Shown piece by piece: positions 50,119-51,322 of a DNA stretch of 64,000 bases. The stretch is from Kudoa neothunni (lineage: Eukaryota > Animalia > Cnidaria): positions 4,303,354 through 4,367,353 of the forward strand of contig OZ199838.1 in assembly GCA_964304625.1 (NCBI GenBank), given 5' to 3'. Under the pieces are notes generated by a model. It did no database searches. It was not told where the DNA came from and was given only the letters and a program-made list of their open reading frames with translations. Every line of letters starts with the position of its first letter. Within the stretch, counting starts at the first letter, position 1. The translations under genes and the position numbers were made by a program.

Positions 50119-50461
50119 CTCGTAACAACGCATTTACTTTTTGTGGTGAATGTTAGAATGGAAATAGATAATAATTTCCAATAATTTAATTAAAGGTATT
50201 GTTAAACGGTTTCAGTTTTAAATTTTCGTTTTTCTGCTTAGCTAAATCTGAATCGATCTTAATCCTTATTCATTATAGTGAAATTATTCACAAAAATTCC
50301 ACATATAATTGAGTTTTTAAAATTATTTTAAATCGGTTCTTTATCATTCTATTAGTTACTGAATGAGAGGATTCAAAATTCGGAAGGTTAAAATTCACGT
50401 AGGCACATGCGTATTGACATATGTTTTAATTTTAAAAGTTTGGAGAATTTTGTCATAAAAA

Positions 50462-51322
50462 ATGATTCATGTTAGTTATTTGATACAAATATAAATTGAG
50501 CTAGACGAATCTAATTTTACTTTAATACTTAAATTTTAAATTAGACTTAGGTTGCGCGGGCAGTTTCGACCAAATTTCAAATGAAGGCTTTCGTACAATC
50601 ACGATCTTTCCTACCATCACTTAGCAAATTTCAGATGATTAAAATAATTAACAATATATTTCCTGATTATACCAGAAGGTCGATGAGCGAGGTTATTAGA
50701 AGCACCTCTGAAATTAAAGAAAAAACTGAACTCGACAGAAAACTAGAATCTATCAATTTTACGCTCAATGATGCGGGGCTTGATGATTGTTTGTCTATAC
50801 CTTACCACTCAGAAGAACAAATACAACAAATTGTTATTGATAATCTTGTAATGTTTGGTGTGGAACGAGAATTGGTACGTGTTAGGTTGATGTTGTTATA
50901 TTTCATTGATTTATAGATAACATTGGATTGCGATCTTGTTGATGATATTGGCATAAATCGATTTGATATGTTGCAACTTATTGAAAGTGTAGAAAAATAC
51001 ATAAGTAAATGATCGAATTAGTAGTTTTTTTACTTTTGGATGGAATAACTTTGTTAGATTTTTCAATGTTGGATGACGATGCTTTACAATGCAGAACTGT
51101 CAGACAAATAGCCAATCGTCTTTACACTATTCTTATGTATGATAAAGCTGACCAACTACATCGCGGCCCTTATTATTGTCCATGTAATTATTAAATGTGA
51201 TTTTTGTCAATGTGTTATGGATTTTAGCTGACTATGAAATGTACCATACATTCTGCCTTAAAATTGATGAGCTTTCATATGTGGACTATCTCAAATATTT
51301 GTTTTCATCAAAAGAAAGATAA
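50462..51322 (+). CDS. Mitochondrial acyl carrier protein homolog (NDUFAB1-like) lacking the phosphopantetheine serine
   Basis: Exons 50462-50470, 50551-50874, 50917-51004, 51058-51183, 51228-51322. Basic Ser/Arg-rich presequence. Core ITLDCDLVDDIGINRFDMLQLIESVEKYINFSMLDDDALQCRTVRQIANRL aligns without gaps to E. coli ACP [51 protein letters not shown]. Confidence 0.8.

Follow-up and report, generated by a model that had tools for sequence, protein, structure and literature searches.

A gene of the myxozoan Kudoa neothunni, a cnidarian that lives as a parasite of fish, encodes a homolog of the acyl carrier protein (ACP) in which the serine that normally holds the prosthetic group is replaced by arginine. 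It lies on the plus strand, at positions 50581-51322, of a 64,000-nt stretch of contig OZ199838.1 (hereafter the window), whose base composition of ~30% GC is that of an AT-rich eukaryotic genome. In canonical ACPs, the serine of the Asp-Ser-Leu (D-S-L) motif carries 4'-phosphopantetheine; once acylated, the protein docks on LYR-motif proteins via its helix II and extends its acyl arm into these partners. We regard it as very probable that the window gene is a selected serine-less ACP paralog, that is, a single-copy homolog under purifying selection, with conserved extensions, which stands beside a serine-bearing gene in the same genome. The fuller statement—that this paralog of mitochondrial ACP is now an acylation-independent protein-binding subunit—is in our judgement an even call.

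The four exons join into an intact frame of 603 nt that specifies an acidic protein of 200 residues, and all three introns are of the GT..AG type (Table 1). As read in the earlier note on this DNA, the codons AAT CGA TTT lie in frame within an intact spliced gene, with the arginine codon CGA (50959-50961) at the position of the phosphopantetheine serine. The five-exon model proposed at the same time had to be revised: since the orthologs described below (L002, L010 and L011, the labels of three short contigs) do without the proposed mini-exon, and it is not conserved, we count four coding exons. Three of the four orthologous genes begin with MK[AV][FL] at this ATG, the window gene, L002 and L011 having both the motif and the ATG context in common, and the frame upstream of 50581 is not conserved with respect to L002. 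Exon 1 ends at a GTACGT donor. Exon 3, 27 of whose 41 columns are invariant across the four species, occurs once in the genome, as does the gene as a whole. The last exon has the same length in L010 and L011, and in L002 its frame starts in the same way, the contig stopping 76 nt into it. Upstream of the start codon, a 16-nt element (CRCATGCGTAYT..CA) was noticed by eye at 50403-50418 of the window and at L002:104-119, with ~12 of 16 bases shared; its distance to the start differs between the two genes, which may have a promoter element in common here.

Table 1 Positions of the serine-less ACP gene and its parts in the window, and of the serine-bearing paralog elsewhere in the genome
Feature	Position	Strand	Length	Description
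Proposed first exon (M-I-H)	50462..50470	+	9 nt	unsupported; orthologs do without it
Coding exon 1	50581..50874	+	98 codons	variable basic presequence-like N-terminus (~46 aa), conserved 31-aa N-extension, ACP helix I
Intron 1	50875..50916	+	42 nt	phase 0; same place in three orthologs and in the serine-bearing paralog L001
Coding exon 2	50917..51004	+	88 nt	loop I, altered motif G-I-N-R-F-D, helix II; 88 nt in 4/4 species
Altered attachment codons	50956..50964	+		AAT CGA TTT = Asn-Arg-Phe where canonical ACP has Asp-Ser-Leu
Intron 2	51005..51057	+	53 nt	phase 1; assuming its GTAATG donor, L001 has an intron matching in place and phase
Coding exon 3	51058..51183	+	126 nt	helices III-IV, start of C-terminal extension, to HRGPYY motif
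Intron 3	51184..51227	+	44 nt	phase 1; GTAAxx donor and (T/A)TAG acceptor kept in all orthologs
Coding exon 4	51228..51322	+	95 nt	aromatic-rich end of C-terminal extension; stop TAA 51320-51322
Serine-bearing ACP gene	G000:C1:15197032-15197612 = L001:1372-1930	minus		four exons, presequence-like start, single copy

Profile comparisons in both directions connected the spliced protein to ACPs. Against a hidden Markov model (HMM) built from 71 distinct gammaproteobacterial ACPs (out of 80 bacterial acpP loci), it scored 21.4 bits over model positions 5-69, whereas none of 1000 shuffles exceeded 6.5 bits, and the Ser36 column of the model aligned to the arginine. The reverse profile, made from the four orthologs, matched 71 of the 71 ACPs (median score, 19.2 bits; shuffle maximum, 9.3), and when the four-species alignment was compared to that of the ACPs with hhalign, E was 1.2e-5. 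An ACP core that aligns without gaps had been claimed; its homology is far above chance, but one gap has to be allowed for, an insertion of 3 residues that follows helix I. Pfam models, PF00550 included, gave no match on the window gene when run per single exon, because the ACP domain is divided among three short exons, and it was our own ACP HMM, run on the joined protein, that revealed the family. Viewed as a member of the PP-binding family (PF00550), the protein matches the profile across helices I-IV and lacks the attachment serine of D-S-L. Changed relative to ACP are this serine (to Arg), the preceding Asp (to Asn or Ser) and Glu41 (to Gln); Asp38 and Glu47 are kept, and helix II retains its hydrophobic face. 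Judged from these profiles, the core of the window gene is an ACP homolog. A profile search of the PDB returned nothing for exon 2, and a match of exon 3 to Musashi was rejected as chance.

Word-based and exhaustive HMMER searches with exon 1 provided orthologs from one ENA metagenome contig and two Logan assembly contigs. The exhaustive search, run with the profile of exon 1 and its N-extension over 1.84 billion representative proteins, returned these three other contigs only, and a word-based search with exon 3 recovered a fragment of L011 and no further orthologs. The three contigs are probably myxozoan, judging by the shortness of their introns and the gene structure they have in common. 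Gene structure is alike in the four species, with internal exons of exactly 88 and 126 nt and introns of 32-53 nt. None of the four has a serine at the attachment site: GINRFD of the window corresponds to GINKFD, GLSRFD and GLNQFD in the orthologs, and in every species found, the phosphopantetheine serine has given way to Arg, Lys or Gln, residues that are long and polar.

The most trivial explanation of the missing serine would be a base-call error at its codon, or else a pseudogene that drifts neutrally. Both are in practice refuted. The four assemblies are independent, and each spells the position with a codon of its own (CGA in the window; AAG, AGA and CAA in the orthologs). Since the three orthologs also lack serine, each by way of another codon, the lone base-call error that the earlier note had thought unlikely is ruled out. 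Nor does the gene behave like a dead one, as frames are open and exon lengths identical. Over 148-154 alignable codons, the proportion of differences at synonymous sites (pS) ranges from 0.65 to 0.96, which is saturated, and that at nonsynonymous sites (pN) from 0.10 to 0.25. Because pN stays this low while synonymous sites are saturated, we conclude that the window copy is under strong, not relaxed, purifying selection.

Conservation spans a gapless block of ~150 residues, made up of a 31-residue N-extension, the ACP core and a ~50-residue C-extension. The last of these, suspected from the window sequence at the outset and borne out by the orthologs, is the best conserved part of the protein: 31 of its 44 columns (70%) are invariant across the four species, it is rich in aromatic residues and it holds two invariant cysteines. 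Such conservation among orthologs argues that the last exon is real. In the core, helix II is the most invariant stretch (F-D-x-L-Q-L-I-E-x-x-E). No match in Pfam, the PDB or the ESM Atlas accounts for either extension, and a feature search of the ESM Atlas with the N-extension gave nothing at 0.9 or above. Preceding the core, the N-terminus of the four proteins comprises 41-80 residues with 8-13 Lys and Arg versus 0-3 Asp and Glu and is rich in Ser and Thr, as opposed to an acidic mature part (30 Asp and Glu versus 15 Lys and Arg). The PDB search also pointed to a weak likeness of exon 1 to human prefoldin subunit 4 (E = 0.23-0.33), located in the N-extension before helix I (window 50716-50814) and consisting of a shared D-D-C-L-x-I-P-Y. 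This candidate was rejected: given that the genome has a prefoldin 4 gene of its own (C3:7752173-7752487), and that this gene scores only 0.6 bits with the family profile (379 of 1000 shuffles score as high), we take the resemblance as chance.

The window gene is not the only ACP gene of the genome. When all six frames of the genome were searched with PF00550, a single place was hit (G000:C1:15197173-15197259, minus strand, 17.2 bits), an exon that reads GIDSYD. It belongs to a single-copy gene near G000:C1:~15197000, labeled L001, which retains the attachment serine. A second, serine-bearing ACP gene is thus present, and the description of the window gene as "the" mitochondrial ACP does not hold. 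L001 resembles the serine-less gene in the positions and phases of both core introns (introns 1 and 2), in a presequence-like N-terminus and in an aromatic residue after the motif position; it differs from it in keeping Asp-Ser, in lacking a C-terminal extension and in its exon 2, where the two share ~30% identity. L001 scored 13.7 bits with the profile of the serine-less family (best shuffle, 6.3) and 10.8 bits with the bacterial ACP HMM, as compared to 21.4 bits for the serine-less protein. Because the core introns coincide in position and phase, we interpret the serine-less gene as a paralog of the serine-bearing one, and introns and profile score together support common descent of the two. 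The ACP duplication is then older than the split of the four species. A search for orthologs of the serine-bearing gene L001 found none.

Closer inspection of L001 revealed a break in its frame. With the expected GTAATG donor, exon 3 is continued in a frame that closes after ~15 codons, and the ACP-like helix III-IV region lies in another frame; a weaker donor 14 nt downstream (GTTATA) reopens the frame at the cost of a loop 4 residues longer. The shift could reflect alternative splicing, a 1-nt error in the assembly or real decay. As the K. neothunni assembly was built from Thunnus albacares HiFi reads at ~7x k-mer coverage (preprint), an indel error at this place is possible.

We searched for the pathways around ACP in six frames and exon by exon across the whole of this intron-rich genome, a procedure whose negatives are soft: it misses genes that ought to be there, since the model of the 49-kDa subunit of complex I (NDUFS2) found nothing in the genome even though the equally conserved 51-kDa subunit NDUFV1 is present (C1:16056222-16056665, 117 bits). 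Lipoate synthesis genes were recovered, namely LIAS (C2:2727193-2728237; 195 + 95 + 56 bits) and LIPT2/LipB (C1:8302224-8302769; 149 bits, and 127 bits with Pfam LplA-B_cat). Together with GCSH (C3:4767355-4767489), they are well conserved. NFS1 is present as well. In the same genome-wide searches, with their tendency to false negatives, a ketoacyl synthase and MCAT, both of mitochondrial type II fatty acid synthesis (FASII), and both phosphopantetheinyl transferase (PPTase) domains were not detected; weak fabF matches, tried as a ketoacyl synthase, proved to be thiolases and a translation-type GTPase. The presence of LIPT2, LIAS and GCSH implies that acyl-ACP chemistry has probably not been wholly abandoned. 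For lipoylation enzymes that use octanoyl-ACP to occur beside no detected ketoacyl synthase, MCAT or PPTase, either the searches missed these genes or the octanoyl source is unusual.

These results bear on the possibility that the serine-less protein is the only working mitochondrial ACP, the serine-bearing gene being in decay, FASII lost and uncoupling as complete as in Plasmodium. As assembled, the serine-bearing gene shifts frame on passing from exon 3 to its ACP-like last exon, which fits this scenario, as do its poorer fit to the ACP profile and the undetected ketoacyl synthase, MCAT and PPTase domains. We nevertheless consider it improbable, given a conserved octanoyl-ACP transferase (LIPT2) with LIAS and GCSH, a donor site that restores the frame, a read coverage at which an indel error may arise and a search procedure that overlooked NDUFS2.

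We therefore favor a division of labor between two ACPs, with subfunctionalization inferred because helix II is the best conserved part of the core, the prosthetic site is gone and a serine-bearing copy remains. After duplication of the mitochondrial ACP, the serine-bearing copy would have kept the carrier job, presumably the supply of octanoyl groups to LIPT2 and LIAS, and the serine-less copy would have given up its prosthetic group and become a purely protein-binding, structural subunit. Its conserved helix II may dock on LYR-type partners such as ISD11-NFS1, LYRM3 and LYRM6 of complex I, the mitoribosome or assembly factors, with extra helices of the extensions supplying contacts normally given by the acyl-phosphopantetheine arm. 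Part of the scaffolding performed by ACP would thereby be freed from fatty-acid supply, as in Plasmodium. That a serine-less ACP homolog is conserved and under selection makes an acylation-independent role reasonable, and candidate partners and pathways (NFS1, NDUFV1, LIAS, LIPT2 and GCSH) are encoded in the genome. Of the proposal in the earlier note, an acylation-independent ACP in a parasitic animal, the selected serine-less homolog stands, with the amendment that it is an extra copy next to a serine-bearing ACP. The accompanying idea that the adjacent phenylalanine replaces the acyl chain looks weak, because the serine site itself is polar or basic (Arg, Lys, Arg, Gln) and the paralog has Tyr at the position of the phenylalanine; ordinary ACPs carry Leu there.

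Several observations weigh against the docking of the serine-less protein on LYR-type partners in mitochondria. A basic residue at the serine position, unlike the Phe of Plasmodium, would face the basic LYR motif. No LYR-motif proteins (PF05347) were found in the genome, small families being hard to see per exon. A second model of such proteins, PF13232, likewise found nothing, but its controls were silent too, making this result uninformative. The N-terminus, described early on as presequence-like, is indeed basic, rich in Ser and Thr and poor in acidic residues, and so compatible with a cleaved mitochondrial presequence, although on composition only. Finally, the extensions are better conserved than the ACP core, which could mean a quite different job.

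The last point leads to a neofunctionalized ACP fold, in which the core is a mere scaffold and the extensions have taken on a task that is specific to the lineage and has nothing to do with LYR partners; the protein could then belong to some other complex, or serve as a regulatory decoy for ACP-recognizing enzymes. An aromatic-rich C-extension with two invariant cysteines that outranks the rest of the protein in conservation agrees with this reading, as do an N-extension confined to three other contigs among 1.84 billion representative proteins and the failure of Pfam, the PDB and the ESM Atlas to explain the added segments. Set against this are the partner-recognition helix II, which is still strongly conserved, and the closest precedent, the apicomplexan mitochondrial ACP (mACP), which still binds LYR proteins (PMC8547962). 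On balance, we find neofunctionalization rather unlikely, albeit the most serious rival to an acylation-independent binding subunit.

In the papers searched, serine-less mitochondrial ACPs are reported only from Apicomplexa and Vitrella, the sole groups in which two surveys of such proteins encountered them (PMC8547962, PMC11293456). In Plasmodium, mACP has a hydrophobic residue, Phe113, at the serine position, binds its LYR protein without an arm and is essential for the stability of Isd11-Nfs1 (PMC8547962), and its LYR proteins no longer possess the acyl tunnel (PMC11293456). The Kudoa protein is like mACP of Plasmodium falciparum (PF3D7_1208300) and its apicomplexan and Vitrella relatives in being a selected serine-less ACP homolog of a parasite with a presumed acylation-independent role. 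Beyond this, the two systems part. Plasmodium has Phe at the serine position, a hydrophobic contact to Isd11, whereas the Kudoa family has Arg, Lys or Gln there and a conserved Phe one position later. Plasmodium mACP is the only mitochondrial ACP of its cell and its mitochondria scavenge lipoate, whereas Kudoa has a serine-bearing paralog besides, along with LIPT2, LIAS and GCSH. It does not show the apicomplexan state of a sole mitochondrial ACP with FASII and PPTase lost, even though ketoacyl synthase, MCAT and PPTase went undetected in searches whose negatives are soft. Conserved N- and C-terminal extensions belong to the Kudoa protein and not to Plasmodium mACP. The Kudoa serine-less ACP arose independently of the apicomplexan one, and in an animal. 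With Toxoplasma, it shares the occurrence of two ACP paralogs in one parasite and the loss of a conserved serine, but both Toxoplasma copies lack the serine (Cys or Gly), as opposed to one in Kudoa.

Canonical counterparts are the mitochondrial ACP of animals (NDUFAB1/SDAP) and the paralog pair ACPM1/ACPM2 of Yarrowia complex I, and duplicated ACPs with divided roles are known. These proteins keep the D-S-L serine and bring acyl-phosphopantetheine into their LYR partner, and to our knowledge none of them has a C-terminal extension of ~50 residues. Common to the NDUFAB1 type and the Kudoa protein are an acidic core, a conserved helix II and an N-terminus that is presequence-like in composition. 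On sequence evidence, Kudoa appears to add an independent serine-less ACP in an animal, in the form of a paralog with added conserved segments. In line with the earlier note, which knew of no animal example, our literature search found none; no paper tied ACP biology to Myxozoa, the sole co-occurrence of the two being in an unrelated review of eukaryote phylogeny.

Acylated ACP is regarded as a metabolic licence in animals and fungi: the LYR-motif proteins that serve iron-sulfur (Fe-S) synthesis, the mitoribosome and the assembly of complexes I-III depend on its acyl-phosphopantetheine arm. The only escape from this coupling that we know of is that of apicomplexan parasites. With its conserved serine-less ACP, a parasitic cnidarian would provide another, independent of the first. 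The protein comes with a built-in comparison, a serine-bearing paralog in the same cell, and its extensions may reveal what substitutes for the lost arm. The occurrence of octanoyl-ACP-dependent lipoylation enzymes in a genome with no detectable ketoacyl synthase would in addition point to an odd metabolic state. One may go further and propose that a myxozoan acylation-independent ACP scaffold, evolved separately from that of Apicomplexa, has taken over the structural roles of ACP in Fe-S synthesis and/or complex I, that FASII (ketoacyl synthase, MCAT) has been lost and that the serine-bearing copy serves lipoylation only or is decaying. We offer this extension tentatively, as possible though doubtful; if true, it would make Kudoa the first animal in which the respiratory chain and Fe-S clusters are assembled independently of fatty-acid synthesis in the mitochondrion.

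Lastly, two places ~32 kb apart (C2:196268-196453 and C2:228589-228774) obtained identical scores in one of the searches. The former is the one of the pair that we read, and its open frames resemble a translation-type GTPase (domains II-III). That both sites score alike suggests a recent segmental duplication.
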